This document shows positions 4,619 through 62,700 of a stretch of 64,000 nt of DNA, in pieces. How positions within the stretch are numbered: the first letter of the stretch is position 1; each line of letters begins with the position of its first letter. The position numbers were made by a program, and so were the translations under genes. Below the pieces are notes generated by a model, which had not been told where the DNA came from, made no database searches, and saw only the letters and a program-made list of their open reading frames with translations. This DNA comes from Macrostomum lignano. Lineage: Eukaryota. Where the stretch lies: NCBI GenBank assembly GCA_002269645.1, contig NIVC01002405.1:113448-177447 (forward strand). The letters are read 5' to 3'.

Positions 4619-4650
<32 letters not shown>

Positions 4651-15000: not shown

Positions 15001-18000
15001 CCATGCGAGTTTGCACCTGCGAGCGGGCGGCGGCATTGAGAAATGGAGAGTCAATTCATTGCAATTAGAATATTGACTGGAAAATTCCACTATAATGACA
15101 CGAAATCTCAATGCAAACAGGAGATTCCACAATCCTGACAGGAATTCCAACAACCCTGACAGGAATTCCCACAACCCTGACAGGAATTCCCACAACCCTG
15201 ACAGGAATTCCCACAACCCTGACAGGTATTCCCATAACCCTGACAGGAATTCCCACAACCCTGAAAGGAAACCCCATAACCCTGACAGGAATTCCCACAA
15301 CCCTGACAGGAATTCCCACAACCGACAGGAGACCCAACAACCCTGACAGGAATTCCCACAACCCTGACAGGAATTCCAACAACACTGACAGGAATTCCCA
15401 CAACCCTGACAGGAATTCCCACAACACTGACAGGAATTCCCACAACCGACAGGAGACCCAACAACCCTGACAGGAATTCCCACAACCCTGACAGGAATTC
15501 CAACAACCCTGAAAGGAAATCCCATAACCCTGACAGGAATTCCCATAACCCTGACAGGAATTCCCACAATCCTGACAGGAATTCCCACAACCCTGAAAGG
15601 AAATCCCATAACCCTGACAGGAATTCCCACAACACTGACAGGAAATCCCATAACCCTGACAGGAATTCCCACAACACTGACAGGAAATCCCATAACCCTG
15701 ACAGGAATTCCCACAACACTGACAGGAAATCCGATAACCCTGACAGGAATTCCTTCAACACTGACAGGAAATCCGATAACCCTGACAGGAATTCCCACAA
15801 CACTGACAGGAAATCTGATAACCCTGATAGGAATTCCCACAACCCTGACAGGAATTCCCACAATCCTGACAGGAATTCCCACAACCCTGAAAGGAAATCC
15901 CATAACCCTGACAGGAATTTCCACAACACTGACAGGAAATCCCATAATCCTGACATAAATCGCATAAAACTGACAGAAAAGTCTCCAACTTTTGATAAAT
16001 AATTCAATAATCTGTCCTATCCTGGCTAGACTTGCTTCTTTTTCTAGGAATACTCGTAAGAAACCAGAAAGTTACATTAAGCAGTCCTAATGTGTTTCGG
16101 TTGAATGTGCTCAAGTAAAACAGCATTATTAAGCACACGGCAATCCATAAACGCACTCCATAATTCACAAACCTGAATGCCAAAGGTCTGCAGGTGACTG
16201 TCGTGACTAAAATTGGCCTTCCGCACCAGGTTGTTGATCTCGCGCTCCCGGTCCGGGGCGGACCTGGCCGTGGCCTTGATCATGGTGGACGTCTGCGAGT
16301 CCGTCAGCTTCTTGATGCAGCGCTGGCCGCTGACAATGTTGCACACCTCCAGTGGCAGGTAGGTGTGCTTGTTCTCCAGGCCCACCTGGAAGAATAACAG
16401 CGATACTTATACATATAGTTTATTGTTGTCACAATGGAACAAGTGGTTCATAGAGGCCAGTCACAATGGAACAAGTGATAAAAAAGTCTTACCTGCAGAC
16501 AGGGCAGCATGGGGTACCGCAGCTTCATCTTGTACCGCTCAGCAAAGTACTTGGCCACCGTGCACTCAAGAGTCTGGCCGTTCTCCATCTGCAGCGGGAA
16601 GCTCTGCGTGCTGGCCGAGCGCCTGGTGACGTTGCAGACGCGGTACTTGCGGCGCATCTGGCCGCAGTGGGTGATCTCAATCTTCAGGCCTTTGATCTCC
16701 TTGGTGAACTTCACCCTGTTGCAGTCGCTCAGCGGCTTCTTGTTGTACTCCTCCAGATCACGGATCTGCCGATTACAGAGCGGATTTTGGTAAATTCCTA
16801 CAGCATGCTACTAAAAGCAGCAATGTGAAAATCATACTCGTTAAAAAAATGGAGAATTTTTACCTGAATCTCCAGCACATCGCACAGAAACTCGCAAACT
16901 GTCTGCGCTTTGTAGAACGCGGTGGCGGACACGTCAATGTTGAGCATCATCTTCCAGTGGCTGGGCCGCACGCTCTGGTGGAAGCCGAACCACACCTCCC
17001 GGCCGCTGCCCAGCGGATGGTCGTTCATCTCAGGCGGCTGGAAGAACGACCGGCCAACCGGGGTGTACTGGAGGCTGGGCAGGTGCCTCATCACCACGTC
17101 CAGGGCGTTCACCGCGTCGGCTGGAATGTTCTGGCGTCGGCCTTCAAGGGCCTCCTCGAGAGCGAATAGCGACACTTCGCCCAGGTACTTCATCATCACC
17201 TGGATGAAGGAGAGTTGGGTTGCTAGTCTGGTCTACTCGTACAGGGATGCTGGAATAAAATGGATTGCTAATCTAGCCTATCATGGGTGCAGGAATAGAA
17301 TGGATTGCTAATCTAGCCTATCATGGGTGCAGGAATAGAATGGATTGCTAATCTAGCCTATCATGGATGCAGGAATAGAATGGATTGCTAATCTAGCCTA
17401 TCATGGAGGCAGTAATAGAATGGATTGCTAATCTAGCCTATCATGGATGCAGGAATAGAATGGATTGCTTATCTAGCCTATCATGGATGCAGGAATAGAA
17501 TGGATTGCTAATCTAGCCCGCAGGAAAAGAATCAGCCTCAGTACCTTGAACACGCGGTCCTTGCTGCCCTCGCCGGGCAGGGTGACCTCCAGCTCAAGCC
17601 GGTCGGTTCCAAACGGCAGGGGGTCCCTGGTGTACAAATTCTTGCGACCATCGAACACCGGACGCTGGTTGAAGAAGTACTTCTGATGGTGCATCGAGTT
17701 CACCATGATATCAACAATCTCGCGGTTAATGCGCCTCGGACACTTGTCAGGCATGATTGACACGTCGTAGTGATGCAGGAAGCCCTTGGGTAACTTAATC
17801 TCAAAGTGGTTGGCCCGCAGGCCGATGTGGCGGCCCTCCATGCCGCGGCCCGGCCGCACAGGCGGCTGGAAGATGATGGACGGCGGCGAAGGCTCTCCCG
17901 ACTCGCTGCCGCCGGCGCCGCCGCCTCCGCCGCCGAAGCCGGAGCCACCGCCGGAAGAGCCGGACGTCAGCGGGCCGTTCCCGCCACCACCCATGCTGCC

Positions 18001-20173
18001 GCTGCCGCCAGCTCCGGCGCTGTGGACGCTGCCAGCTCCCGAGGAAGGCGGCTGGGGCGGCAGCTGGTGCTGGAGAGGCCCCATGTTAAAGGGCCCGCCG
18101 CTGCCACTTCCACCTGGCAGCATCAGCGGTGTCTGTGCGCCTGGCACTAATTAGAGGCAAAGGAATGGCAATGTGTAAGCCACCAATAGTTTTCAGGTTA
18201 AACAGAACTATGAAATTAACTAGTTGGGGCTACTCAACTGTCTGATTATTTATATTAATATCTATTTTGCTGGAATAGGCTAGGGGGCTAAAAGAGTAAA
18301 GAAGAGAAAGTAAAAGGAATAGCGAAGAGAGGAGAGAGTTGATAGAAGAGATGAGAGTTGATAGAAGAGATGAGAGAGTTGATAGAAGAGAGGAGAGATG
18401 ATAAATAGGAGATTACAAATTAGAGATGATCAAGAGAAGAGGAGAAAGTAGAGATAGTATTATAATCTAAATCATAATATCTTAAAAAATATAAAATTTT
18501 GTTCTGGAAACTGTAACATGCTTACAGTTATGTGGCACTTTAAATAGTTCTATACACCAATATGCCAATTTTATATACCAAAGTTTATTGTACACCAGTG
18601 CAGTATGTATGCCAAGAAAAAGGGTACAGTTGAAATCATCATATTCAAAATCATCATATGATGATAATGACTTGACCTAATCTGTAAAACTTTAACATTT
18701 AAATATCTTTGCCTGTATTCTAAAATCTAAAGTCATACTAAAACAGAAACTTGTTAATAATAGAGGATAGATGTAAACAAAACTGGAGTAAATTTGTGTA
18801 AAATTAGATTTGAGGCAAGCATTGATCTCATTGGCAGAATGTCAGACAATGTTTGTTGAAAACATGTATTGGCAAACTCTGGCCTCTGCCTCTCTCTATA
18901 TCCCTTAGATCATTCCTCTCTTTTTCCTCTCTTCTCTCTTATTTTTGTCTCTCCTCTCTTCTTGTCTCTTCCTTCTCTTCTTGTCTCTTCACTCTTTTTT
19001 TCCTCCTCGTCTCTGCTCTTTACTCTCTCCCCTATTTGGTCATTTAGGCCCACTTGTACAATTCTTTAGCCCACCCTAGGTTAAAACACCCTGGCTTCCA
19101 CATTGCATTTTCAATACTGTGACATAATTTAAGTCAGTGTCAAAATTTAGCCAGTACACAGACTGAATAAATAAAAGCCTAGTGTGATGCAATCTATTTT
19201 AGAATTAGAATTCAACCAGTCAGTTTTTTTTAGCATTCTTACAATGCATTTTAATTCAAAAGAGCTGCTTGACCTTTGTAAAAAAGCATGTTTTTTAAAT
19301 ATCAAATCCCTTTAGCATCGAGCAATTTCTTTCAATCAAACAATCAAACAAACAAATTTCAATCAAACAATTACATGTACTATCATGGGAAAATTTCTTA
19401 TTGAACAGTGCAAGTCTCGTGAAAATTGGTCAAGCCATCTTTTCTAAAAATGATTATATACCTAGATAGATAGATACTTACTGGCAAACATGCAAACCTT
19501 AGAGATTTAGTATATTTAGATGTCTATATTTGTATACTGTATTGTATTTGTGCTATATTTGGATTTTTATATTATTAAGACTTTATACTAGGCTATAAAA
19601 CTATTTATTTATCACATATTGAAGAATGAGTCAACTTATATAATAAATATTTGAGTCATCTTTCTTGGATATAAAATCTAATAAAATAAAATAGGCCTAA
19701 CATATCTTTAGAAGCTTAAAAATAATTTTATGCATGCTAATCTAATAGCTATATTGCAAATTAGTATCCTAATGATTGAAGTTTAAAAAAATATATTTGC
19801 CTCTAATAATAGAATTATTAAACCATTATAACATGATTTTTCTCATTCCTAGTTTGAACTTAAAGCCTATAGGTTGTCTCTTCCCTGCAAAAATTCTGGA
19901 TCTGTGTCATCTTTGTCATTTGACAAAGATTATTATTAAATCCACTATATGAAACTTTAAAAAATGCAACAAAAGTAGGCCATAGTAAAAGTAAGCATAA
20001 CTAAAAGTGATTTAATTTATATTTGCTGAATAAAAACTAACAAATTTGGGTTGGGCATACTTACTGAAAGACACTGCTCGCTGATTAAAGTCTTGGGCAT
20101 TTTGATAAAGTGCACTATTATTGCCATTGGCATTAGCTGGAAAGAGAGAATTACCACCAAGCATCATGGCCAT
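12041..20173 (-). CDS. AGO: Argonaute, miRNA/AGO-clade, slicer-type (N, PAZ, MID and PIWI domains)
   Basis: Exons (-) 20173-20065, 18146-17545, 17199-16864, 16765-16493, 16385-16173, 15016-14636, 14115-13666, 13249-13010, 12349-12041; total 2913 nt, 970 aa, all GT-AG. Motifs [82 protein letters not shown]. The first exon ([12 protein letters not shown]...) is the least certain. Confidence 0.96.
12365..12985. repeat. 23/25-bp quasi-palindromic minisatellite (GCGACTCTCAGTGAGACTGGAGG), ~26 copies, last AGO intron
   Basis: Direct; period 23 (12366/12389). Confidence 0.96.
13320..13560. repeat. 40-bp minisatellite (GGGGTTTCCAAAAGTCATCCAGGGTTTCCAGCAGGCGACC), ~6 copies, AGO intron
   Basis: Direct; period 40 (13341/13381/13421). 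Confidence 0.92.
14235..14501 (-). mobile_element. tRNA-derived SINE, copy 1, in an AGO intron
   Basis: Minus strand reads GTAGCCTAGTGGTTAGAG (A-box-like), GGTTTCGATTCT (B-box-like), then TGTGTCCTTGAGCAAGACACTTAACTCTGCATTGCTTCAGTTCACCCAGCTGTAAA. It aligns by eye over ~270 bp with 22764-23075. Confidence 0.8.
15125..15965. repeat. 21-bp minisatellite (CCCTGACAGGAATTCCCACAA), ~40 copies, AGO intron
   Basis: Tandem unit read directly. Confidence 0.96.
17258..17518. repeat. 40-bp minisatellite (TGGATTGCTAATCTAGCCTATCATGGATGCAGGAATAGAA), ~6.5 copies, AGO intron 2
   Basis: Direct; period 40. Confidence 0.95.
18280..19079. mobile_element. Possible foldback/MITE-like element in AGO intron 1
   Basis: Left end CTAGGGGGCTAAAAGAG; reverse complement of the right end CTAGGGTGGGCTAAAGAAT. 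A GA-rich left arm (18295-18460) faces a CT-rich right arm (18880-19030). No TSD found. Confidence 0.35.
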
Positions 20174-21555
20174 AGCAAATTTAGAAATCTTTACTTTGAG
20201 TCGGTGTTAATGGGGAACAATTGATTTCAATACAATGATTTTTTAGGACAACAGTGAAAAGTAGGGCCTATGATATAATAATAAAAAAGTAATAATATTT
20301 TTACTATCCACCACCGAACGCGCTGACGACGACGAGGAGAATAAAATTTTTGTTAACTGTAACCAACGTTCAAAAATACATTTTAACTTTGATTTTATTT
20401 AGTTATCAAAAGGGAAAAACTGTGCCTAGGTATGTGAACATTTTGTTTATATGCTAATATTTCACGAATATTAACAAACTACTTTACCCTCACTTATTTC
20501 GAAGGACTGAATATGCGCGTTTCTGTTGTTTAGTTGTTACCGTCACTATTAAAAAGCAAGGTCTTTTAAAATAACTAGTAACAATTATTTATTTTTTAAA
20601 TTATTTATGCTAAGTTTCTAAGCACGATTTGTTCGTGCGTGACTTATTTTTTTCTTGCTTTTCTTGAGTGCTCCACCACGCAAACCTTCACTCCCTAAAC
20701 TGACGTTTAGATGAACTCTTATCTTTCTAGTTAGTAATGTTAGAAATAATTTGATAGCCAATAGACGGATCTATATTCTGAAGACTTGTCGAAACGAGCC
20801 TAATTTGTTAAAATCTTTTTTTTCTAAACCTAACTAAATTTTGATGCAATGTCGATTAAAACATTGCAGTTCAACATAATGATAGCGCAAAGAAATTTTC
20901 GCCAGCCTTTTCGTTCATTGTGTGCATTCAAGTCTAATATAGATACAAATGATAATGTATATAAGGTAGGCTCAAAGGAATTTCACTAGGCCTATATTTT
21001 GCATGTTCTGTAATGTAACTATAAATATAATTAGCCAGCAGTTGGTTCAAAAAGTTGCAAATTTAGAGTTGGTTAATTCTAATAAAAACTCTTAGCCAAG
21101 AAACAAAATCTCTATGCAAAGATATAAAATAAACTATATAATTAGAACTAGGTACTATTAATAATACTAATTAAGAATTTATGGCTTACATTTATTGCTA
21201 TGCTAGATATTTTTGTTTTGAGTAGGAGAGCCTAGTATTTGATAGGCCTAACAAATATAAGTTGATGTAAAACATGAAAATCTAAGTCAATGCTTTATGG
21301 TGGTAATGCTGACAACCTTGAGACTGGCATCATTGGCAGATGCTGCAAGGATTCTGTCATTATGCCAGTTATGCACTAGGTCAACCATAAACAGCTTCTT
21401 CTCTAAAAAGATAATGGTCTATCCAGCACCATGGCCTTTGATCTAGTTGAGCAAATCATGCAACTGCTGCAATTACCACTTGCACCTTAGTGACAAGTTG
21501 CTTTGCAAACCAAGTCCAGATGCAAGTCAGCCTTTACTAGTTTATGCATTGACAT

Positions 21556-22047
21556 CACACTCCGGATCATGTAGTATACGCCTGAAAATTTGGGCATGCA
21601 TTGGCCTTGCATGCCAAAATTAGGCGTGCACAGTTGGCATGCATCACTCCTGAGAAAAAAGTATGCGTGTGCACCTGGCATGCACTTTATAGAATCATGT
21701 GTAAGAGTCATTGTAAAGTAGAAAAAAGATGAAAAAAAGTTCATTTTTAGGCACAAATTTCAAGCTTTTGGGTTTTTTCCAGTTCGTAAAAGAGTATTTA
21801 AACAAATCTTTGCATGTATAAACTTTCCGCTATAAATAGTATTGCCGAATATGCTTTAAAAGCAACAAAATTATCTAATAAGGGTCTATTATGCAATTTA
21901 AAAAAGTCTTTGTCACAACATAAAAAAGGTCATTTATTGTTGCAACACTAGCGTATTTTTGAAAATGGGCATGCACTAATTTTTTGGCGTGCATTTATAA
22001 TTATTTAATTTTTGTTCAGGCATGTACCCAGCATGATCTGGACTATG
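21556..22047. mobile_element. Non-autonomous DNA transposon (MITE), 492 bp, imperfect ~40-bp TIRs and a perfect 10-bp TSD
   Basis: GCATTGACAT occurs at 21546-21555 and 22048-22057. Left end CACACTCCGGATCATGTAGTATACGCCTGAAAA; reverse complement of the right end CATAGTCCAGATCATGCTGGGTACATGCCTGAACAA. Confidence 0.75.
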
Positions 22048-22763
22048 GCATTGACATTGGCATCATTCTATGCTTAGCTGTCAGTTTCCTAATTGACTGC
22101 TAAGGATCAGGGCAAATCTTGGTTTTCTTGATAGCAATTATCTTGGCAATGCAAGTAGATCATAGGAAACCACTCCTTGGCTTATGGCACATATAGCCCT
22201 AGTGCTAGATTGTTGCTTTCACTTTGTAAACTATTGCCAATCAGTACTTAAGTTGTGTATAGATTGTCTTTGGAGGCAGGCTCACATGGAATAGCTTGGT
22301 AGCACTTTGCCGCAAAGCTTGCTGCTTGCTCATAGTCAAAGAAAATAGGAAAAATACTATATTAAAGCCAAAAAGATTTAGAATTCTTTCCTTCATAGAT
22401 GCAAAGATTAATTTGAAATTTTCCAAGAAATTATCCAAAAATTTTTTTTCATTTTATTATACCTAGTAGTAGTAATATAGTACTAAAAAGACTAAAATCT
22501 GGCAAACAGATTTGGCAGCCAACCAAGGTAAGTTGCAAAAATGCCCCACTAAAAGGAATACAGACATAGTACTAATTAGATGATAAGGCATTTCGCCTTA
22601 ATAGGACATGATTGTTACTCCTGCCATTTACCCAAAATTGCATTAATTTTGCTTTACTTTCTTTTTTAAGTAAGTTGCATTTTTGGCCAAAGACTATGTT
22701 GCATTTTTTGTTAAAACTAAGTTGCATGACCAACCAAGTTTTGGAGGTTGCGCATGTATAGGT

Positions 22764-23075
22764 TGTAGCCTAGTAGTGGTTAGAGCATTAGATAGGCCTA
22801 CTAGTATACTTATAACTTGAAGTTTGGAAAGTTCAATTCCCAATCCCACTAAAACAATTTGTGTCATTGAGCAGGACACTTAACTCTGCATTGCTTCAGT
22901 TCACCCAGCTATAAAATAGGTACCAGAATTGTGCCTAGCTATGGTAATTGAGGGTGTGTGGTAACCCCCAGTCTCTAGACTAAATAGCCATCTGTAGTCT
23001 TCCAATATACCACACAGTAGCTACAGCTAAGCTGTCATGTCAATTGTATCTGTCCCAATCAGGGCAGTGTAATTA
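22764..23075 (+). mobile_element. tRNA-derived SINE, copy 2 (more diverged)
   Basis: A-box-like TAGTGGTTAGAGC, B-box-like GTTCAATTCC and the same central GAGCAGGACACTTAACTCTGCATTGCTTCAGTTCACCCAGCT as 14235-14501. Confidence 0.8.
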
Positions 23076-23537
23076 ATTATTATTATTAATATTATCTAGG
23101 GGACAAGAATACCAAAAGCAGTTAAAATATCTAGTTATAAAGTAGAACTGAGCTTGGTTCCAATGGAGGTGGCTGGTGGCACCCTATGCTTATATTTGAT
23201 TTTAACCTATTTCTTTACTGCTCTCTCATTAGCTGAGCTAGATTGGGCCTGTCTCCTAGGCTGAGTTTTGTCCATCTTGCATTCAATTCAAGTGTGCATA
23301 TTGAGTTAAATGCTTATAATTCATTCTTGACCCCATATGCCCCTGTGGCTGCAAACCCCAAGGAAAGAAAGGAACTTTTTTGCTGTCACGTTTAAGTTAC
23401 ATTGTGTAGACAACTGCTGAAAAAAAGAGTGGATTCCGAAATTTTCAAAACTTTAATTGCAACTGACATTATGCCAGTGACATCTGTATATAGTAATAGC
23501 TAGACTATATATTGTGTATTGTTTCTATAATTTTTAG

Positions 23538-26500
23538 ACTAACTATGCCAACATGAAGAAGCTGGTATCTGATCTGGAATCCAAGATTCAGCATGTTTTA
23601 AAAGGTGAGTTTAAAATTTCTTAGTTAAAGTTGGGGAATTTGTTGCTAATTACACAGTTGCTAATTAACTTGGGCTCAACTAGGCGGAGGTGAAAAGGCT
23701 CGTGAGCGGCATCTGAGCCGTGGCAAGCTGCTGCCCAGAGACCGGATTGGCCACCTGCTGGATCCCGGATCTGCATTCCTTGAGCTGTCGCAGCTGGCAG
23801 GACACGAGCTCTATGGCAAAGAGGAGGTGCCAGCTGGTGGTATCATCACTGGCATCGGCCAGGTTAGTGGGTGAGTCAGCCTTGTTAACCTTATTCATCT
23901 GTCACTAATTTGTCAGACTGCCAGGCACTAATTGGTGTGATTTTCAAATGCTTTCACAGAGTCGAATGCGTGATAGTCGCCAATGACCCGACTGTGAAGG
24001 GCGGCTCCTACTACCCAATCACGGTGAAAAAACACCTGCGCGCCCAGGAAGTGGCTCGCCAGAATCGCCTGCCTTGCATTTATCTCGGTGAGTTTTTGAC
24101 TATTTTGACACAATTCTGGAACCATCCTGATTCTGAACTCTACTTCCGGTTCAATTCCGAAGTTGACTTAATTGCACCATTTCCCTCCAGTCCTATTCCA
24201 ACCTTTGCTTCCGGTTATATTCTAACCCCTACTTCCGGTCCCATTCTAACCTCTACTTCCGGTCCCATTCTGACCCCCACTTCTGCCCCCATTCTTACCT
24301 TTACTTCCGGTCCCATTCTTACCTTTACTTCCGGTCCCACCGTCCCATTCTGACCTCTACTTCCGGTCCCATTCTGACCTCTACTTCCGGTCCCATTCTG
24401 ACCTCTACTTCCGGTCCCATTCTGACCCCTACTTCTGGTCCCATTCTTACCTCTACTTCCAGTCCCATTATGACTTCTACTTCCGGTCAGTCACACCAAT
24501 GTTTTAATTTAAACTCAGATGTGCATTTTCTTGCTATTACCAGAGCAGATCCCAATTCCCACCCCGCCCTCAGTGGATTCCGGCGGCGCTAATCTGCCCA
24601 GGCAAGACGCAGTTTTCCCCGACCGGGACCATTTCGGCCGCATCTTCTACAACCAAGCCACCCTTTCCAGTCAGAACATTCCCCAGGTGGCTGTGGTCCT
24701 GGGCTCGTGCACCGCTGGCGGCGCCTACGTGCCCGCGATGGCTGATGAGAGCATCATTGTGCAAAAGCAAGGCACCATCTTCTTGGGAGGACCGCCGCTT
24801 GTAAGTCTGCCAGGCCTGCTTGCATCGCCTCCTAGGTTTTCCATTGATAATGGCCCATTGGGTCCACTTATCTTTTGAATAATGATGGCCTGTAATTTAT
24901 TTCTATAGCAGCTCTGAGAATCGCCCTCCAATCTCAATGAGAATCGCCCTCCAATCCCAATGAAAATCGCCCTCCAATCTCAATGAGAATCGCCCTCCAA
25001 TCCCATTAAGAATCGCCCTCCAATCTCAATGAGAATCGCCCTCCAATCTCAATGAGAATCGCCCTCCAATCCCATTAAGAATCGCCCTCCAATCTCAATG
25101 AGAATCGCCCTCCAATCCCATTAAGAATCGCCCTCCAATCTCAATGAGAATCGCCCTCCAAACTCAATGAGAATCGCCCTCCAATCCCAATGAAAATCGC
25201 CCTCCAATCTCATTGAGAATCGCGCTCCAAACTCATTGAGAATCGCGCTCCAATCCCAATGAGAATCGCCCTCCAATCTCATTAAGAATCGCCCTCCGAT
25301 CCCGCCATTGAAGGTGAAAGCTGCCACAGGCGAGGAAGTGTCGGCGGAAGCTCTGGGCGGCGCCGATCTGCACTGCCGGCAGTCGGGTGTCACGGACCAC
25401 TACGCCCAGGACGATGAGCACGCGTTGCACCTGGCTAGGCGGGTGGTGGCCCGGCTCAATCGGCCCGTGCAGCCCGCGACTCCCGCCTTCAGCGAGCCGC
25501 TGTATCCGGTGGATGAGATCTACGGCATTGTGGGAGGCAATCTGAAGCGGAATTTTGATATGTAAGTTCTGAGCCGCTGGTTACTGACTGCTCACTTAAT
25601 CAACGTAACTCTGCTGTAGTCTGTTAGTCACTGATAAATGGTCCGCACTGAATGCAAATAACTTTAGATTAACACAAATGTAAGGTCGTATCGGTCATTG
25701 TCTGTAAGATGGCATTGGCCACTGCCTGTAGGTGACATTGGTCACTGCCTGTAGGTGACATTGGTTACTGTCTGTAAGGTGGCATTGGTCACTGCCTGTA
25801 GGTGACATTGGTCACTGTCTATAAGGTGGCATTGGTCACTGCCTGTAGGTCACATCGGACACTGTCTGTAAGGTGGCATTGGTCACTGTAAGACTGTCTG
25901 TATTGTAGGTGACATTGGTCACTGTCTGTAAGATGACATTGGTCACTGTCTGTAAGGTGGCATTGGTCACTGTCAGACTCTCCGTATTGTAGGTGACATT
26001 GGTCACTGTCTGTAAGGTGGCATTGGTCACTGTCAATAAGGTGGCATTGGTCACTGTCTGTAAGGTGGCATTGGTCACTGTCTGTAAGGTGGCATTGGTC
26101 ACTGTCTGTAAGGTGGCATTGGTCACTGTCTGTAAGGTGGCATTGGTCACTGTCTGTAAGGTGGCATTGGTCACTGTCTATAAGGTGACATTGGTCACTG
26201 TCTGTAAGGTGGCATTGGTCACTGTCTGTAAGGTGGCATTGGTCACTGTCTGTAAGGTGGCATTGGTAACTGTCTGTAAGGTGGCATTGGTCACTGTCTG
26301 TAAGGTGGCATTGGTCACTGTCTGTAAGGTGGCATTGGTCACTGTCTATAAGGTGACATTGGTCACTGTCTGTAAGGTGGCATTGGTCACTGTCTGTAAG
26401 GTGCATTGGTCACTGAATCACTAGCAACTATGGTTGAATCCAAATAAAGTCGTATCGCTCAGCAGCCTCTCGCATTCGCCTCTGCAGTCGCGAGGTCATC

Positions 26501-27517
26501 GCCCGCGTTGTGGACGGCAGCGAGCTTGACGAATTCAAAGCCATGTACGGCGAAACCCTCGTCTGCTGCTTCGCGAGCATTCACGGCCGCACGGTGGGCA
26601 TTCTGGGAAACAATGGAGTGCTGTTTAGCGAGTCCGCTGTTAAGGTGAGGTTGCGCTTGGCTCATTTCTGAATAAACTCTATTCGTAGATTAAGGTTAAT
26701 CTACTTTTTATGGGTATGTTCTATGGGTATATTCTGTGTGTTTGGGGACATGGGTGTTTTGTGGTCGGTGTAGAGGGTTCTTGATGGAGGTAACTGGATT
26801 TTTTGGGAAGAGTATGGGCATTTTTAAGAAGGCCGTATGCATGTTGGTGAAGGCTATGTGCATTTTGGGGAAGGGATGTGCATTTTGGGGGAGACTATGT
26901 GCATGTTGGGGAAGGGGATGTGCATTTTGGGGGAGACTATGTGCATGTTGGGGAAGGGGATGTGCATTTTGGGGGAGACTATGTGCATGTTGGGGAAGGG
27001 GATGTGCATTTTGGGGGAGACTATGTGCATGTTGGGGAAGGGGATGTGCATTTTGGGGGAGGCTATGTACATTTTGGGGGAGGCTATGTGCATTTTGGGG
27101 GAGACTATGTACATTTTGGGGGAGGCTATGTGCATTTTGGGGGAGACTATGTGCATGTTGGGGAAGGGGATGTGCATTTTGGGGGAGACTATGTGCATGT
27201 TAGGGAAGGGGATGTGCATTTTGGGGGAGGCTATGTACATTTTGGGGGAGACTATGTACATTTTGGGGGAGGCTATGTGCATTTTGGGGGAGACTATGTG
27301 CATGTTGGGGAAGGGGATGTGCATTTTGGGGGAAACTATGTGCATGTTGGGGAAGGGGATGTGCATTTTGGGGGAGGCTATGTACATTTTGGGGGAGGCT
27401 ATGTGCATTTTGGCAAGGCAATCTGCAGAGGCTGCAGCAGGCAGGATTCTCACGCCTCGCAACCGGCCGCCACCCGAGCAGGGCGCGCACTTCATCCAGC
27501 TGTGCTGCCAGCGCGGC

Positions 27518-27549
<32 letters not shown>

Positions 27550-28893
27550 CTTCATGGTTGGCCGCGAGGCCGAAGCTGGCGGCATCGCCAAGCATGGAGC
27601 GAAGCTGGTGACCGCCGTGGCCTGCGCCCGGGTGCCCAAGATCACCCTGATTGTCGGAGGCAGCTACGGCGCCGGCAACTACGGCATGTGCGGCCGCGCC
27701 TACGACCCCCGCTTCCTGTTCATGTGGCCCAACTCGCGTATCAGCGTTATGGGCGGCGAGCAGGCCGCCAATGTGCTGGACCAGATCCAGCGGGAGCAGC
27801 GGCAGAGGGAGGGCCGCGACTGGACCGAGGCGGAGTCCAGGTGCGAGTTATCCTCATTCGCCCCGTTCACCGATTCACCAGTTCACCCCGTTCACTAATT
27901 CACCAGTTCACCCCTTTACATCGATTCACCAGTTCACCCCTTTACATCGATTCACCAGTTCACCCCTTTACATCGATTCGCCACACTTCACCCATTTTAC
28001 CGAGTCACCAATTCATCCCGTTCACAGATTCACCAGCTCACCCGTTCACAGATTCACCAGCTCACCCGTTCACAGATTCACCAGTTCACCCGTTCACAGA
28101 TTCACCAGTTCACCCGTTCACAGAATCACCCGTTCACAGATTCACCAGTTCACCCCTTTTACATCGATTCACCAGTTCACCCCTTTACATCGATTCGCCA
28201 CACTTCACCCATTTTACCGAGTCACCAATTCATCCCTTTCACAGATTCACCCGTTTACCCGTTCACAGATTCACCAGTTTACCCGTTCACAGATTCACCA
28301 GTTCACCCCGTTCACAGATTCACCAGTTCACCCCGCTCACAAATTCACATGTTAAAATATCAGAGCGTTTAACATTTCAATAGTTTACGGTTTACTACGC
28401 TCACTGATTCACTCGTTCACCACTTTCACAAATTCACCTGTTCACAGCTTAATTATTTCACCAATTACGCTGGAACAGCTACGGCAGAAATGCACGCCAT
28501 TCAACTAATTCGCTAGTTTAAATTAATTTCACACAGCTGTTAAACAGCAAATCACAGATGATCACAAATGTACATTTAGTTACTATCCACATTCACTACA
28601 TTCACCGCTTCACAGAGCTATTGAACTTCTCACATTTACAGTTCAATTCACATTCGAGCTTGAGTACACTGTTCACATTCACGACAGTGTATACTATCAC
28701 AACTCGCAGAGCCCTTCGCGAGCCGGTGCTGGCCAAGTACGAGCAGGAGGGCCACCCCTACTACAGCTCGGCCAGGCTGTGGGATGACGGCATCCTGGAT
28801 CCTCAGCAGACCCGCTCCGTGCTGGCGCTGGCCCTGTCCGCGGCCGCGAACTCGCCAACTGAGGCCACTCGGTTTGGCGTCTTCCGCATGTAG
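23538..28893 (+). CDS. MCCC2: Methylcrotonoyl-CoA carboxylase beta chain (carboxyltransferase); the 5' exon with the mitochondrial presequence was not located
   Basis: Exons 23538-23604, 23684-23870, 23960-24087, 24574-24800, 25314-25561, 26488-26644, 27482-27840, 28710-28893; 518 aa. Motifs [85 protein letters not shown]-terminus FGVFRM*. Confidence 0.97.
24215..24490. repeat. 24-bp minisatellite (CCCATTCTGACCTCTACTTCCGGT), MCCC2 intron
   Basis: Tandem unit read directly. Confidence 0.93.
24915..25300. repeat. 23-bp minisatellite (GAGAATCGCCCTCCAATCTCAAT), ~17 copies, MCCC2 intron
   Basis: Direct; ends ~13 nt before the acceptor. Confidence 0.95.
25700..26412. repeat. 24-bp minisatellite (GGCATTGGTCACTGTCTGTAAGGT), MCCC2 intron
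   Basis: Direct; source of the HLTDSDQC-repeat ORF. Confidence 0.95.
26865..27415. repeat. 42-bp (2 x 21) G-rich minisatellite (CATTTTGGGGGAGACTATGTGCATGTTGGGGAAGGGGATGTG), MCCC2 intron
   Basis: Tandem unit read directly. Confidence 0.94.
27860..28345. repeat. Degenerate ~20-30-bp minisatellite (CACCCGTTCACAGATTCACCAGTT), last MCCC2 intron
   Basis: Tandem unit read directly. Confidence 0.9.
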
Positions 28894-29569
28894 CCACCGC
28901 CTTACTAAGGAAATCTCGTGTAGCAGCCGATATGTATCGAAAATCAATTTTGCTGGCGTCGGTTTTCAAAACAATTAATTAAACTTCCATTGTGCATTAA
29001 AGATTGTTTCAATTTGTTGTTAGTAGCGATTTCTTACATCACCGATATGTATCGAAAGAATTATTTGCTTGCCAAGAAGTTACTCTGCGTTGCAGGTTCA
29101 TTCAGTTTAAGTCAGTGTACCCTTATAGTAATCTTATTATTCTTATTAGATATTAGATTATAATTGTGCGCGCTAATCCTCTAGTACATTCAAGATTAGT
29201 TGGAAAAATCGATCAAGTTAGCATTGCGTTTCAATTCGTTTGTTCGCGTCTTGGTTAGTGTGTATAAGTACATATAATAAAAGTACATTCTGCCTGCTAG
29301 GCAAAAATAAACATTTACCGGCCAGGTTTCTGAGAAATTATTAATTAGCTGATCTCGGCATTCCACACCAAACTATATTTGAATTGTTTTGAGCATGAAT
29401 TTGATGTTTTTTTAATGCTCATATTCTACTTTTGAGTAGTACCTCACGTATGGCGTTTGTAGCTTGAATTCAGCATAAACTAACATCTGGTACCGGAATT
29501 GAGGACTCGGAACAGGGACTCTTGGATTGAAGTCTGTATCTTCGGGTGGGAAATCGGGTCAGGAACTGG

Positions 29570-37113: not shown

Positions 37114-38637
37114 TATCTTATCCCTCTTGTCTACTTTGATGTCTCACTCATGCCTCCTCTTTTATCTCTCATATCCATTCTAATCTCTTCTCTCTCCACT
37201 ATTATCTATACTTTCTCCACACCCTCTTATCTATCCTCTCCACTCATATCTTCCTCCCTCTTTCCTCTTTTTTCAAGAGATGTTTCATTAAATGAATCAT
37301 GCTCAAACAACACGGGTGTATCAAAAGGTCGATAGTCGCTCAGGTAGATACTGAACTCAGAAGTTGACGCATTCGACTTTCACACACCCCGCTCCACCTA
37401 CAGAGAAAGCATCTTTGCAGCCCCCGGGGGCAGGTCTGCTACACGAGACCGGGCCATGATTTGGCTCATTTCGGCGGCCGTCCAATCCAAAGTTCGCCAG
37501 CACCCGTGACAACCGATATAAAAGCCTGATGCGGCGGCCCCCGGCGGTCTCTTCCCTGCTCTCCACGCGAAGGTCTGCTAAAACAAAAAAGTGAAATCAA
37601 AGGAAGCAAGAGAAAGTTGACAAACTTGCCCTGTGCATCCGGGAGCAACTTTCTAAGAAGCATTCAAACAATTTTTCCGACCAAGGTGCGAAGCGTTTTG
37701 TTACATCTCAGAGACAAACAAGAAAGGTGAGAGCTGCAAGGGACTCCCCAGTCTCCCTTGTATCAAAAAGTGCACAGATTGCTAATCTACGCACATGGTG
37801 CGTGGCTGTCATATTTATGAAACAAACAGTAATTTAACGAGAAATATGTAAAAATGTAGCAGGGATTTTCCATTCTGAACTGGCTTTTCAGTCGATCTCC
37901 CAGTTTGCCTGTACCGGCTCTCCCTCAGCCTTCCTCCCCCCCCCCGAGCCTGCCCGCCCATCTGCCCATGCATATCTTCCATCGTCGACGAAGGATCAAC
38001 ACTGCCTGCAGCCAATGCGTCGGTAGCATTGAGAACTCCTGCACCCGTGGGCCCTGTTCGAGCCATCAAGTAATCGAATAAAGAAAAATTTCACAAAAAA
38101 TCCATTTGAGATCGGCGTGTCTGGCGGTCGCACCTCGGTCCTCGATGGTGATCCCATGGCTCTGCGCCACCATTACTGGACCAAAAAAATTGCCATCTTC
38201 TCACTCTGCTAGACTCGGCTCCCAGGTCTGCTTTCGCGCCTTGTCTGTTTCTCTGTGACGAGCGGAATATTCCATGCTCTCCGCTATTCAATAAAAAATA
38301 CTGCAAAATATTTTTGCTACATCTGGACTGGATGCTTGTAATTCGTGCGAAATTAGAAAAATGGTAAATCAATGAAGGCTCTGTTGAAAAAATGGATATT
38401 TCAGTCCTCATTTACTACTTACTCTCCCTCTCTGTCTCTCTCTCTCTCTCACCCTCCTCTCCTATCCCTCTTTCTTACTTTACTCCTTTCTCTCCTACAT
38501 TACCTCTCGCATGCGCCCAGTTAAGAAAATACTAAATAAACCAATCTAAATTAAGAGAATATTATATAGATTTAAATTAGAGTTAAATTGAATAGTAAGA
38601 GAAGTGGGTGATGCCACAGGGCCCAAACCAGTTATGT

Positions 38638-38715
38638 ATAAGACATTAAGACATTAAGGTCATTAAGGACATTAAGACATTAAGACATTAAGACATAAGA
38701 CATTAAGAAATTAAG
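38638..38715. repeat. 8-bp tandem repeat (TAAGACAT)n
   Basis: Tandem unit read directly. Confidence 0.85.
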
Positions 38716-40285
38716 GGGGTTGAGTCCAGAATAATTAAAGAAGGGGTGGAGTGCGCTACTGAGTAGAGGCAAGAATGGAGAGCCAATCAGAAGGTGGCGA
38801 GGGAGAGAGATAATAATAACAAGATCGAATTAGACAAGAAAGAGAGAGATAAAACAGAGTAAACAGAGACAAGTGAAGGTGAACTGAAGAAATGACTAAG
38901 AAAGTCGTCGTGACAAAAATAAAAGAAACGAAACGAAATAGAAAAGACCGCTTTTCATGTCGGATCGGCCGATGCATATTGGTGGCGTGATTTAGGCAAA
39001 ATTGGCGAACTCTAGCCAATGATTTGTAGCAGCGTTAACGCCTAAATGATAAAGACAGACAAGACGAGACACACGACAGTGCTTGTAGCAATGTAAAATG
39101 AGCAATGTACAATCGGGTAAGAGGTTAAGGGTGTCGTGAGCGCGCACTTGGGGGGCAGAGAAATTCGGGGCGGGGCAGACTGGCGGAGGGGGGTTGGGGA
39201 ACGGCGCGAGAAATGGTGGGGGGCGGCCATGGCCGCCACTCTATCCCTTCGTTTTACCACTCGCTCTGGCTTCTAGTGAAATATCGATTTTTATAACCGC
39301 CTCATGACACCAGGCAGCATTGAAAACCGCCACCCTACACTTTGGCCCTGCAATTGACGCAAGGTTTTCTAACTTTCGCTCAGGCGCACAGCGTGGCGGT
39401 TTTTAATGTTGCTGATTGATTGACTTTGATTTAACTGCAGAGGTCCAGATTCGACCCGACACAGGGGACGCAGGGGAAGGCGCCTTCTATCTCGCTCTTC
39501 ACGGCATGCTGAACTTGCTTTCGCGAGCAGACCACAAGTTCACGGCTGATACAATGCACGTGAAGTCCAGCTGCTTTAACTGATCTACAGCGTCCCTTGA
39601 TCTCAGAGCTGTCTTCAAAGACAAGCTGAGCTTGTCTTCTTGCAAGCCAAACTTAGGAATTCGCTAGTAACAAGCCAGGCTTGACTAATTCGAATTTGCT
39701 ATGCAGCTTGTTCGAAATTTAAAAGTACGATTGATAAGTACGCACTCTCAGGGCTCATTTTTAGTGGCGCTTGTTTGTTTGGTGAGGGGCATTGTTCCTT
39801 CAGAACGGGCACCTCGTGTAAATGCAGCGGCGGTATCAGTATCCACCAGTAGCAGACTCGAGCACTTTTGCGTAGCACTGTGCCTCCTACCATCACTAGG
39901 AGTGTAATGCATTCCACTGAGCATTGGCAAGTTTGGGCGGGACACCCATTCACCACCCAATATAAGTTCCCGAATGGATATCTGTAGCCCGGAGTGGCGA
40001 ATCAATTGTATTACGCGACTCCAGAGAGCGAGATCCCTCTGTCTGGCAGAAAGATGAGAGCAGCCTGCTAGTGCAGGTTCCCCTGATCCTTGGCTTGTAT
40101 CTCTCCAGTGACCAGTCCCGCCTTGATATTGAATTTAATAACGAATTTTTGCGCAGAATAAGAATTGAGAGAAGAGAGATAGACAGAGAGCAGGGTTTAG
40201 CAGACGGACTCAAATTCATTTAACGATTTCTTTTTTGTCCAGCATTAAAAATAATCAATTTGATCTTTCTAAAACTGTCTGCAGG

Positions 40286-40840
40286 ATGCTGACTCTGAAG
40301 CTGTTCCGCCTTGTCATGGCGGTGCAGTGCTGCCTGCTGCTGGGCGCCCTGATTGGCTGCTGCGATGCCCGAGAAGACGACAACGATGAGCTCAGCTTTG
40401 TTGAACGGCGAGGCGCTTACTACGGCCTGTTGGGCAAGCGAGGCCCTTACCATCGCCTTCTAGGAAAGCGAGCTGGATATCGCGGCCTGCTCGGAAAGCG
40501 AGCTGGATTCCGAGGCCTGCTCGGAAAGCGAGCTGGATATCGCGGCCTGCTCGGAAAGCGAGCTGGATATCGCGGCCTGCTCGGAAAGCGAGCTGGATTC
40601 CGAGGCCTGCTCGGAAAGCGAGCTGGATATCGCGGCCTGCTAGGAAAGCGAGCTGGATATCGCGGCCTGCTCGGAAAGCGAGCTGGATTCCGCGGCCTGC
40701 TCGGAAAGCGAGCTGGATTCCGCGGCCTGCTCGGAAAGCGAGCTGGATACCGCGGCCTCCTGGGCAAGAAGCGAGTTTATCAGCGCCTGTTAGGCAAGCG
40801 AGACGGAAGCCCGTCGCATGGCGCGGCTCTGCAGGAGTAG
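40286..40840 (+). CDS. Neuropeptide precursor (prohormone): signal peptide plus 13 amidated peptides (6x AGYRGLLa, 4x AGFRGLLa, GAYYGLLa, GPYHRLLa, VYQRLLa)
   Basis: ATG at 40286 directly after the acceptor CTGCAG|G; 184 aa. Hydrophobic Cys-containing signal peptide, acidic spacer, peptides each followed by G-KR amidation/cleavage sites. AATAAA at 40998. Confidence 0.95.
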   Translation: MLTLKLFRLVMAVQCCLLLGALIGCCDAREDDNDELSFVERRGAYYGLLGKRGPYHRLLGKRAGYRGLLGKRAGFRGLLGKRAGYRGLLGKRAGYRGLLGKRAGFRGLLGKRAGYRGLLGKRAGYRGLLGKRAGFRGLLGKRAGFRGLLGKRAGYRGLLGKKRVYQRLLGKRDGSPSHGAALQE

Positions 40841-42470
40841 AGACAAAGCCAAGCTAGGACAGAGAGAGAAGAGAGGAGAGGAGAGAAAAAATATACATTG
40901 TCTGGATGCCATACAAAAATTAACAATATACTGAACCCACACAAGCGTGAGACAGGTTAAATCGACAGCTTAAAATATACAAAATTATTTTATTCGAAAT
41001 AAATTTGTCACATGGAAAGTGCAACAACCATTGCAACACCGCAGTACATGGAGCTGTGGACTCGTCGCTTTGCTTTTCTAACTGTGACGAAATAAAAAAT
41101 CAGGAATAATCAGAGACCGAAAGCTACCGGTAAGATGGATCAAGAGACAAGCAGTTGGATTAGAGACAGGCTAATCATAATAATTACGAGTATAATGATC
41201 AGCGAAAGGTTGACAGACCAGACTGACCAGAGAATAATCAGAGAACAGAATGAATAGACAGGCAAAACCTGATCAAAGCCTGCTGCTGCAGACAATAACA
41301 ATGTCAACCGATATCGAAGATTTCCCCAACATCAGACTTCAGCATCGCTATCAAGATAAAGTCACATGACCCGATTTGCTTCACTTGATCAGGTTTAAAA
41401 AGTAGACTAAGGCATAATGCACGTATGCGGTCAGCATTGAATTCAACTCGTTAATTATTAATACTTCGATGTATTTAGTTTTCATGTTAATAATTTGAGA
41501 CAGAAAAATGAGAGCTGTCTCAATTAAACTTGCTCAAATTTACTAGATGACCAGTGATTTTAGAGACTAGATTACTAGGATACAAGGGGGTACACATTTT
41601 ATGAGTCACATGATCAGAGAATTCAATCACAAGAGTAGCAAATAGCAAAGGTTATGAAGAGCGGAATAGACAAAGCCAGTAAAAACGGGTATAGAGCAAA
41701 CAGGAGAGCCGAATAATAAAAATTCATCAAATTCGTTTCCTTGCTGCGTAAAAAGGCACATAAATAATCGCAGCATAATACTAAATCAAGTAATACTAAT
41801 CGAGCATTGTGATTAAATTAAAAAGTTGCACAAAACAAAAAATAAAATAAAAAGTTGACCAAAAACATTGTAATACAGGAAGAGCAGAGCAGGTGTATAT
41901 AGAAGTTATAAAATAAATAGATAAGGCGGTGTAATATAAATGAAACATTCGAATGAGATTCAAAAGCTAACAATTAAGTAACACTGGCAGTTTTAATAAA
42001 ACGGGTAGCAGTGAGTTTCGGTGCATGTATTTATCATAGATCAGAGGCTAGAGAAGTTATTGACCACCCGGAGAGGTGCAACATCGGCGGAATATTCAAA
42101 ATTTTAGTACAAGAACCTTTGCCGATATGTTGCGTAAAAACTTTATCGAGGTATAATTTCCAAATTCAAATCTCGCAGTGGCCCGATTCGCGCCAAAGAT
42201 TCTGCATGATAACAAGACAAGTACAAATGATAAGTCCAAAGGCACACACAAACTCGGATGAGAGTGCACTTGCACTTCAAGTACTGTGAGTACTGTGCCT
42301 AGCCCTCATCGGCGGAATTCCTCACAGAACTGACGCGAAGTGTTTATCAGTATTTATTTTAATACGATGCACCTGCATGGCAGCCCACTCTTATTTATCA
42401 GTATAGTACTGACAACACACATATTGATCCTGATTGTTTTCGTCGTACACAAATGTTGATTGAGCATTCT

Positions 42471-42684: not shown

Positions 42685-59748
<17,064 letters not shown>

Positions 59749-62700
59749 TGCTAAGAGCTGTAAGATGGTGGAAAATCAAATATATTGTCTAGGATAAATT
59801 AGGCACAAATTTGGCATTGCTTCCTAATTACAAAATTACAATATAAGGGACAAACTCATTTAAAAAACAGCCTAATTGAAATACTACATAAATTAATAAT
59901 ATACATTATAGTTTAGAACTATGTTAATAGACAATACATGTAGTTCATACAAGCTGTATGTGTAGATATTTTAGCATCATACTGAATAATATATTTTAGA
60001 GGCTTACAAGAGAAGGGCACAAGAGAAGGGTACCATTTATTTGTTAGACAGTTCTTATATATAGCATTACATTGTATTGGGGAATCGGGCATATGGAGGT
60101 GCACACACAGAAGCATGAGTCATTTTTCCTAGACACATCCAAGCTGGCTGACTTGGTGGAGTCACCCTACTAGCCAGGCATACTGGAGCCTGTGTGCAAA
60201 CGCCCTAAGCTCTCGATCCCGACTATGCTACAATATTATGTTTTTCAATAAAAAATTATTTTTATCTACAACTATATAAATATAACCACAGGTATTAAAC
60301 ATAGAGAGAAAATTTTCCTCGGGTCACATTGTGTAATTATCTAAGAAAGGAATTTATTCCACCTAAATATAAGTTATCAGACAATAATAATAATTATTAA
60401 AATAAATGTACAAATATATGCAGCTAAAGTTTTTGAAGGTTATCAGGATTTTTTCTTTGCTATCTTAGTAACTTCTCAATATATGTAATTCAGTATGCTA
60501 AAAAAATTTCCTCATCATTGCTATTGCCAAAAAGGCTATATTGGTTCATTTAAAGAAAAACAAACTTTTAGTATTGCAATGGATTGTAATAAATTGTAAT
60601 GGAATTTTCTTCTACTAATAGTTTCATTGAGCATCAAATACTTATAAAGAGAAATCATAATTTAATTCAATAACATGGGTCATAAGCACTAAATGTTGAA
60701 GTATAAGTAACTAAAGTAAGGAAAGCTACAGGTAAGAAATTAAAAAGCTGTTTGCAATGGTTTATAATTAAAAAAACGAAATGACCGAACTTGGAGTGTA
60801 ATAATTTAAAAATAATATCAAAGTATCAATAAAATTTTATCTAGAATGAAAAAGAATTGTCACTTAAAAAATTAAAGGAGAACTAGCGGCACTTCCCTTT
60901 CGTATTTCAATTCTTGGAAGTTGTCGCATTGAAAAAACAAATTTCGTGAACTTTAAACTTGGCACTATTTTGATAGCGCATTAAAATTCACTTTACAGTG
61001 ATAATTTTAGCAATAAAGCATCTTTAGTTGTTGAACTTTAGTAGACAATTTTCAATTTATAATTATTTGAAGGTTAAAGTTTTGTTATAATGTCTTAACT
61101 CCGGCACTTCGTAGTTAATACTTATGGTAATAGTTATCTAGATATTGCATTCTCTTTTGCCGCAATTTCCGCTCCATTTCAATTTAATCATACAATACAG
61201 CGCAGCAACCAAAAATACAAAAATCACTTTTGAAGTTTTATTAAAGATGAATGTTTGTTTATTTACAAAGACACATTGTACAGACTTCGAAGATTCATTA
61301 AAGCAATTTAAAGCCGCAAAAGGCAGCTAAAAACGGGTCATTCTGCTCGAAGCAAGAAAAACTAGTTCTTCGTTTTTCATTTTTTACTCATGTTTGCCCT
61401 TCCTCGATCAATTTTGTGCAGCAACTGTCTCTATCATATCATATGTTTCTATTCGTAAGCCGGTGGTGCTCACTCAAAAATGTTTTTAAAGCACTCAGCA
61501 AAATGAACTAAAAATGTCGCTTCTTAGAATTATTATGATTTTTTATATGTAATAAGTTGCATACCAAAACAGTACAACATTATGTACATGTAGTTTACTC
61601 ACAACAAAAGTCCGCAATGATAAGATATCAACATTTAGACTCTTTTTTTGCAGAAACTATATGAATAATGCACCTAAAAATACATTTAAAGCAGATCAAT
61701 TATAAAACCAAAACATTTAGCAAGCTTCTTAACAAAGCTCACGATTCTTAAGCACGTTACCAACTTTTCATTGAACCACTGTAAAATCCAGTCATTCCTA
61801 TTCAGCAAAGATTGTTATACCGCTCGTAATGATTGAAATTAACGGGCCAGTGTATATGTACCAAGTTATCCTTCATTAGATTGACGGCTAAGAGAGGAAG
61901 AGAGGTAATTACCACAGCTCATGAGAATTCTACCGTTAACAATGCACCCGATCCACTCGCGCCGCATTACAGTAACATAATGTATTTGCACGCATGAAGT
62001 CTCACAACAACTGCACTCAGCTGAGCCATCCGTCAGCCAGCTGAGCCTAAATGGGCCTCATCGATAGCAAAGCGGCGAGCCGGGCACAAATAACACGAGC
62101 GCTACAATAGATCGCTGCTGGATTTGGGCGGACAAACGCACTTGCCCTTACAATCAATTCAAACTGCATAGAGAGGTTGAAATTGAATTTCGAAATCCAG
62201 CTGGACTGACGCAATTATACGCAGAAAAATTGCACTTAATGCTCGGCTTCTGGGTCAGTTGGGTAAATGCGCCGGCTGGAGGATGGTTTGCATAATTTAA
62301 AACGAGTTTGATTTGCATTTGAAACGGTATTTCCTCGCGGCCTGATGCGCTATATAGTCGTAATTCTTCGTGACGCTAAAATCGCAGCCAACCGGAGCCC
62401 AAAGGAACAAGTCAGAAGCCAAAATATTGAATGCACTGAAGCCACTGACGGACGTGCCACGAAGTAGCCGGGGTTTTAACCCGATAAATGGGCAGAGAGA
62501 GTATAATGTGGACAAAGACACACTAGTACACTAACACAAAGACTAAAAGAGTTGCTAGATAATATTAACCAGGAATAGAAGGCGATACTACAAGAGAGTT
62601 GGGACAACAAATCATGTATTCATGCTTGGATTAAAGCAATTCCAGAGTAATAATAACAAGCTGCTATGTCAGTTCTTACAGTCAATTGGGGCACTGCATT

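Follow-up and report, generated by a model that had tools for sequence, protein, structure and literature searches.

A Macrostomum lignano gene that very probably encodes a multicopy precursor of amidated AG[Y/F]RGLL peptides built on the core of planarian FRGLLamide

A stretch of 64,000 nucleotides (nt) of the genome of the flatworm Macrostomum lignano (contig NIVC01002405.1 of assembly GCA_002269645.1 [Mlig_3_7], positions 113,448 to 177,447 of the forward strand; this whole stretch is termed the window herein) contains an open reading frame (ORF) at 40286..40840 on the forward strand that very probably belongs to a real peptide hormone or neuropeptide precursor gene. It encodes 13 short peptides that are predicted to be C-terminally amidated, to be made in neurons, and to act on a receptor. 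The gene is BOX15_Mlig014178g1 (termed Mlig014178 herein), whose product is deposited as PAA58165.1, a partial "hypothetical protein" that is also the sole close database match of the precursor. The core of the peptides is FRGLLamide, a peptide of the planarian Schmidtea mediterranea that has been confirmed by mass spectrometry (MS). Positions 28001-50840 of the window were 100% identical to the contig record, and by offset from the record coordinates the window makes up its final 64 kb. In a model for regeneration and transgenesis, the assignment would name a gene deposited as a "hypothetical protein" and suggest its likely function. It would also extend the MS-confirmed planarian peptide to an early-branching flatworm lineage, and it bears on the orphan receptors for peptides in parasitic flatworms, which are under consideration as drug targets.

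The precursor and its predicted peptides

The ORF is a complete prohormone coding sequence of 184 amino acids plus stop, with a start codon in the context GAAAGGATGC (A at position −3), and its parts follow one another on the forward strand. The N terminus is formed by a predicted signal peptide, MLTLKLFRLVMAVQCCLLLGALIGCCDA (40286..40369), in which positions 5 and 8 are basic and residues 9 to 24 make up a hydrophobic core, with Kyte-Doolittle 9-residue means of 2.0 to 2.9 across residues 9 to 18. The residues C-D-A stand ahead of the predicted cut (C at −3 and A at −1), which would fall after Ala28, and hydropathy falls sharply from there into the acidic spacer REDDNDELSFVERR (40370..40411). 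The first dibasic site (RR) lies at the end of this spacer, ahead of the first peptide unit. It is followed by two divergent 5′ units, GAYYGLL-GKR and GPYHRLL-GKR (40412..40471), and by ten tandem core units of 30 bp each (33 bp for the last; 40472..40774), which comprise six copies of AGYRGLL-GKR and four copies of AGFRGLL-GKR in the order Y F Y Y F Y Y F F Y. A divergent 3′ unit, VYQRLL-GKR (40775..40801), and the C-terminal tail DGSPSHGAALQE with the stop codon (40802..40840) complete the ORF. All 13 peptide units terminate in GKR or GKKR, the latter closing the final core unit. An earlier note on this DNA, made from the letters alone, had described 13 peptides flanked by Gly and dibasic sites, the outer ones being divergent, behind a signal peptide and an acidic spacer, and every one of these parts was read back from the ORF.

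Maturation of the precursor would follow the usual route of prohormones. The mRNA would consist of a noncoding exon 1 and a single coding exon, and the 184-amino-acid product would enter the secretory pathway via its signal peptide, which would then be removed. A PC2-type convertase would cut after every KR, KKR, or RR site, a carboxypeptidase would remove the basic residues, and peptidylglycine alpha-amidating monooxygenase (PAM) would convert each C-terminal Gly to an amide; these steps of cleavage, trimming, and amidation are established prohormone biochemistry. The expected products would be six copies of AGYRGLL-NH2, four copies of AGFRGLL-NH2, and one copy each of GAYYGLL-NH2, GPYHRLL-NH2, and VYQRLL-NH2 (calculated [M+H]+ of 748.446, 732.452, 755.409, 854.500, and 790.493, respectively), and these peptides most likely act at one or more G-protein-coupled receptors. 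M. lignano expresses a PC2 homologue in its nervous system, and knockdown of this essential gene is lethal during development. Since the planarian FRGLLamide was confirmed by MS to be amidated and uncut at its internal Arg, the AG[Y/F]RGLL heptapeptides are, by analogy, probably final products.

Selection on the repeat array and alternative readings

The pattern of variation among the units argues for a selected coding repeat and not for one more minisatellite of the window. Pairwise comparison of the eight different unit sequences gave 52 synonymous differences and not one nonsynonymous difference in the five codons of LLGKR, with three different Leu codons at one of the two Leu positions and five at the other, and all amino acid variation among the units is found within the N-terminal half of the peptides. 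This indicates that the peptide C terminus and the processing motif are under purifying selection. In addition, when the window was scanned in all six frames, no other stop-free stretch had more than three G[KR][KR] motifs; the ORF has 13.

Several points weigh against a neuropeptide precursor. The secretory signal is predicted from hydropathy and the −3/−1 rule only, and a Pfam search of the precursor gave no match, as expected for such precursors. The similarity to the planarian precursor is confined to a peptide of 5 to 8 residues and its processing site, a length over which homology and convergence look alike. The literature search found no expression pattern, peptidomic, or receptor data for Mlig014178. 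Finally, the window is rich in repeats: 39 tandem arrays with periods of 4 to 45 bp, many with higher-order periods, cover 20,114 of the 64,000 bases (31%) and sit mostly within introns of the neighboring genes. The period is divisible by 3 in 15 of the 39 arrays, and many arrays yield long spurious ORFs (>100 amino acids), so that a repeat that can be read through without a stop is in itself no sign of coding here; the case for coding comes from the selection pattern and the gene model. This last point would suit a neutral minisatellite that is open by chance in an expressed exon and whose "peptides" are not functional products, as would the complete or near identity of 5 of the 10 core units, which leaves little time for selection to act on them. 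However, it is the diverged units that retain LLGKR, as the count of synonymous differences shows, and the frame, whose initial stretch is signal-like, starts where the mRNA has its first AUG. The peptide core is that of an MS-confirmed planarian peptide, and a second M. lignano gene, described below, is built on the same architecture. We therefore regard a neutral minisatellite as very improbable.

The precursor might instead be processed and secreted outside the nervous system, in gland, gut, or reproductive tract, with its peptides serving a pheromone-like, antimicrobial, or exocrine role. The outcome of the literature search on expression leaves room for this reading, and several planarian prohormones are expressed outside the central nervous system (CNS), namely, in the pharynx, gut, glands, testes, and copulatory apparatus. 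Against it, multicopy precursors of short C-terminally amidated peptides are typical of neuropeptides, the related gene npp-2 is expressed throughout the planarian CNS, and the peptides, on direct reading, lack both the amphipathic character and the cationic length that are usual for antimicrobial peptides. A nonneuronal role thus seems quite unlikely, and a neuropeptide precursor remains the preferred interpretation.

Array copy number, gene model, and neighboring genes

Tandem Repeats Finder reported a period of 30 bp with 10.1 copies and 93% matches for the array, and a period of 90 bp as well. The mean identity between units was highest at lag 3 (0.943, versus 0.915 at lag 1 and 0.908 at lag 2), core units 1 to 3 differ from units 4 to 6 by one base, and several core units are identical at the DNA level (1 = 3 = 4 = 7, 2 = 5, and 8 = 9). 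The ten-unit core is a product of recent tandem duplication, partly as 90-bp blocks. The higher-order repeat that the earlier note had seen in the unit order is real, though modest, as judged from the lag-3 identity and the 90-bp period.

The deposited protein PAA58165.1 contains 8 core units (Y F Y Y Y F F Y) versus 10 in the genome. Deleting any 60 nt starting at 40540 to 40599 (region 40540-40658) exactly yields the deposited protein, which leaves 60 possible placements for the gap in the deposited coding sequence. None of these 60 placements has GT...AG ends; a real intron was therefore rejected, and the gap results from aligning a transcript of 8 units to a genome with 10. Because the deposited model is short of these 60 nt of the array, an exact-sequence look-up of the 184-amino-acid product returned no database record. 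The discrepancy may reflect copy number variation or, equally, collapse in the short-read transcript assembly or an assembly artifact. It had also been proposed that the tandem expansion tunes peptide dosage, which is a reasonable and plausible idea, but its sole basis is the difference between 8 and 10 units, possibly itself an artifact. The discrepancy also warns against relying on short-read transcript assemblies for the copy number of repeat-encoded peptides in the M. lignano genome.

The gene is transcribed and spliced, as seen from its GenBank model: the annotation of the Mlig_3_7 assembly was built by mapping transcripts to the genome, and the BOX15_Mlig014178g1 model is therefore RNA-based. 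Exon 1 (37566..37726; 161 nt) is given in GenBank as the 5′-partial part of the coding sequence, and the N terminus of PAA58165.1 matches 37566-37727 at 100% (tblastn). This exon has neither an ATG nor an in-frame stop, which accounts for the GenBank reading as a 5′-partial coding extension. Read from its 5′ end, the mRNA has no AUG before position 40286, and exon 1 is most simply a 5′ untranslated region. It is followed by a GT...AG intron of 2,558 bp (37727..40284; donor AAAG/GTGAG, acceptor TCTGCAG/G), which includes a small TAAGACAT array at 38639-38715. Exon 2 begins at 40285, one base 5′ of the ATG, and holds the whole coding sequence. A TATA box, TATAAAAG (37517..37524), with a putative promoter function, lies 42 nt 5′ of the annotated transcript start, and a CCAAT motif can be read at 37482-37486. 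The first AATAAA 3′ of the stop codon (40998..41003) is a candidate poly(A) signal, and a second one lies at 41091-41096. All of these elements are on the forward strand.

Upstream of the precursor gene, at about 23900 to 28900 on the forward strand, lies a carboxyl-transferase gene (Pfam Carboxyl_trans) with exons separated by 21- to 24-bp arrays; from our own reading of the translations, we take it to resemble the beta subunit of methylcrotonoyl-CoA carboxylase. Downstream, at about 42700 to 59100 on the reverse strand, KY-like/transglutaminase-like exons occur twice, around 47.6 to 48.1 kb and 57.2 to 57.9 kb. The GenBank model for this region gives a 1,496-amino-acid product with two Ig-like_KY matches, which could represent an internal duplication or two tandem genes. 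Farther upstream, an Argonaute gene (about 12900 to 18150, reverse strand) carries ArgoN, ArgoMid, and Piwi on separate exons, with introns filled by 20- to 40-bp minisatellites, and one large gene on the forward strand (3236-10428) contains RhoGEF and WD40 beta-propeller exons. A long Ser-rich stretch at 4116-4785 falls within a (GCAGTA)n array; it probably belongs to an intron and is not coding. Two AT-rich blocks, at 18000-23900 and 60000-62000, have a GC content of 0.32 to 0.39, versus 0.45 to 0.60 elsewhere, and contain no long ORFs.

Related precursors and known peptide families

A full HMMER search of 1.84 billion representative proteins gave 298 matches. It uncovered a paralogue that a word-indexed protein search, insensitive for so repetitive a query, had missed, the latter returning only the gene's own annotation. 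This second M. lignano precursor, PAA49395.1 (BOX15_Mlig004832g1, termed Mlig004832 herein), has units of AMYSGLLGKR, which would be processed to AMYSGLLamide. Like Mlig014178, it repeats every 30 bp and has a single coding exon with the splice acceptor just 5′ of the ATG, and the last 15 nt of the unit, CTGCTCGGAAAGCGA, are identical in the two genes; the region of signal, spacer, and first peptide aligns with that of Mlig014178 at 35% identity. It differs in its motif, which is YSGLL and not [Y/F]RGLL, and in its number of units, the genome holding about 16 of [A/D]MYSGLL-GKR. At the locus (NIVC01003891.1, local positions 6001-6795), the assembly has a 1-nt deletion near local position 6595 (GGAAGCGA instead of GGAAAGCGA). 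This deletion breaks the frame, so that the deposited protein is partial and its annotation ends after 180 amino acids; with the frame shift applied, the array runs on to ...SGSFASSKENNIRD and a stop codon.

A "buccalin-like" peptide of M. lignano, GAYSGFLG, is assigned to npp-9 (McVeigh et al. 2009, as quoted in PMC9114394). The quoted peptide is identical at 6 of 8 positions to the first peptide of Mlig014178, GAYYGLLG, and shares with it the pattern aromatic-x-G-[L/F]-L-Gly. The two genes are separate, however, and the GAYSGFL unit as quoted occurs in neither the Mlig014178 nor the Mlig004832 precursor. Judged by their sequences, and for npp-9 by the quoted peptide, at least three related precursors are present in M. 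lignano, and the motif common to them is [Y/F]-x-G-[L/F]-L-amide. Among the HMMER matches was also a JGI/IMG metagenome protein from a 976-bp contig with ten GS[M/L]RGLL-GKR units, which shows that RGLLamide-type precursors exist beyond M. lignano and S. mediterranea. Metagenome scans with this protein and with a degenerate DNA pattern for RGLLGKR-x3-RGLLGKR gave no match and did not recover the 976-bp contig. The main texts of the literature searched contained nothing relevant on AG[Y/F]RGLL, Mlig014178, or Mlig004832; the npp numbering in McVeigh et al. 2009 lies outside this scope. So far, then, Mlig014178 is unnamed in public annotation, its core peptide family is already biochemically established, and an earlier listing under an npp number is possible.

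The closest known peptide is that of the planarian gene Smed-spp-13 (UniProt E3CTK4), which was predicted to give two copies of FRGLLamide (Collins et al. 2010 supplements, PMC2953531). The peptide, as KK.FRGLLa.GKR, was detected both by liquid chromatography-electrospray ionization-tandem MS (PEAKS score of 84) and by matrix-assisted laser desorption ionization, with an observed mass of 603.45 and a calculated mass of 603.37 (Table S3, PMC2953531). The earlier note had not recognized the RGLLamides and had proposed them as a new ligand set, a proposal overtaken by this prediction and detection of FRGLLamide from SPP-13 in 2010. FRGLLGKR is present exactly in the four AGFRGLLGKR units of Mlig014178, while the six Y units have Tyr in place of its Phe, and in both precursors the peptides lie toward the C-terminal end, behind a signal peptide and an acidic spacer. 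The planarian precursor differs in having 2 copies, compared with 10 + 3 in Mlig014178, and its pentapeptide follows directly after KK or KR, whereas the Mlig014178 core peptides bear an AG extension. In an alignment of the two precursors, the invariant columns were essentially those of G-L-L-G-K-R, plus four scattered single residues. By sequence, the Mlig014178 peptides are N-terminally extended versions of FRGLLamide; the identity of the core is plain, and orthology with spp-13 is unproven.

The second flatworm family to be considered is npp-2, which encodes seven copies of RGLIamide behind a Cys-rich spacer in S. mediterranea (Smed-npp-2; PMC2953531) and RGMIamide in S. mansoni and other schistosomes. 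The earlier note had given the RG(L/M)I endings of this flatworm-restricted family correctly; its suggestion that the present peptides form a related branch is plausible and unproven, spp-13 being the closer match. Orthology with npp-2 rather than spp-13 would be in line with the ending R-G-[L/M]-[L/I]-amide, that is, R-G-aliphatic-aliphatic-amide, and with the multicopy layout, both of which npp-2 and Mlig014178 have in common. Yet npp-2 (RGLIa) and spp-13 (FRGLLa) are separate genes in S. mediterranea, and the C-terminal match covers 5 of 5 residues of the spp-13 pentapeptide, compared with 3 of 4 of RGLI. The npp-2 products are, moreover, tetrapeptides that end in -LI or -MI, lack an aromatic residue, and stand directly between KR sites, and Smed-npp-2 has its Cys-rich N-terminal spacer, which Mlig014178 is without; the peptides of Mlig014178 instead end in -LL, are 6 to 7 residues long, and contain an aromatic residue. 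We thus consider an assignment to npp-2 unlikely and prefer spp-13 as the nearest relative in kind.

Most of the 298 HMMER matches (GSEFLamide, FRxDLamide, FGLamide, and tachykinin-like precursors and low-complexity proteins) were rejected as homologues because they match via the 10-residue period and the GKR sites. After the RGLL and SGLL precursors, the best scores of any peptide precursors belonged to annelid [F/Y]RxDLamide precursors, with E values down to 7e-17. These precursors, one cluster of which includes Lamellibrachia satsuma KAI0242534.1, contain units such as AGFRTDLGKR and AMYRADLGKR, which share the AGFR or AMYR half and the 10-residue period with the M. lignano units, and occasionally FRGGL. 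The annelid peptides differ in their -DL-amide ending, and their score stems from the shared period and the GKR sites, which makes them a lead and not an indication of common descent. The myomodulin C terminus, [L/M]-R-[L/M]-amide, as in AVRLMRLa of Smed mpl-1/-2, was not found either, the endings here being H-R-L-L and Q-R-L-L in divergent units and R-G-L-L in the core.

The widest comparison is that with the buccalin and allatostatin-A peptides. Allatostatin-A peptides of arthropods have the form Y/F-x-F-G-L-amide. For buccalin of Biomphalaria, the consensus given in PMC9114394 is FxGGI-Gly. The likeness to this family lies in an aromatic residue at −5, Gly at −3, and an amidated Leu or Ile at −1, together with multicopy precursors; the difference lies at −2, where Mlig014178 has Leu and not Gly, so that [Y/F]-x-G-L-L agrees with the strict motif at three positions and disagrees at one. 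In the HMMER search, FGLamide precursors of the allatostatin-A type scored no better than unrelated families. In S. mansoni, an allatostatin-A/buccalin-like receptor, Smp_203500, has been reported without a known endogenous ligand. One precursor that carries both a buccalin-like GAYYGLL and RGLLamide units, together with this ligandless schistosome receptor, makes a bridge between the families worth testing. Mlig014178 would then be a linking form, and the RGLLamides, RGLIamides, and RGMIamides of spp-13 and npp-2 would be derived members of the bilaterian buccalin/allatostatin-A family, a tentative idea that we consider rather unlikely. If it is true, the orphan flatworm receptors of the allatostatin-A/buccalin type, including that of the schistosome, would be receptors for RGLL-, RGLI-, and RGMIamides. 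Taken with the npp-9 peptide as quoted, Mlig014178 and Mlig004832 form a graded peptide series that may connect the flatworm-only families to buccalin and allatostatin-A.

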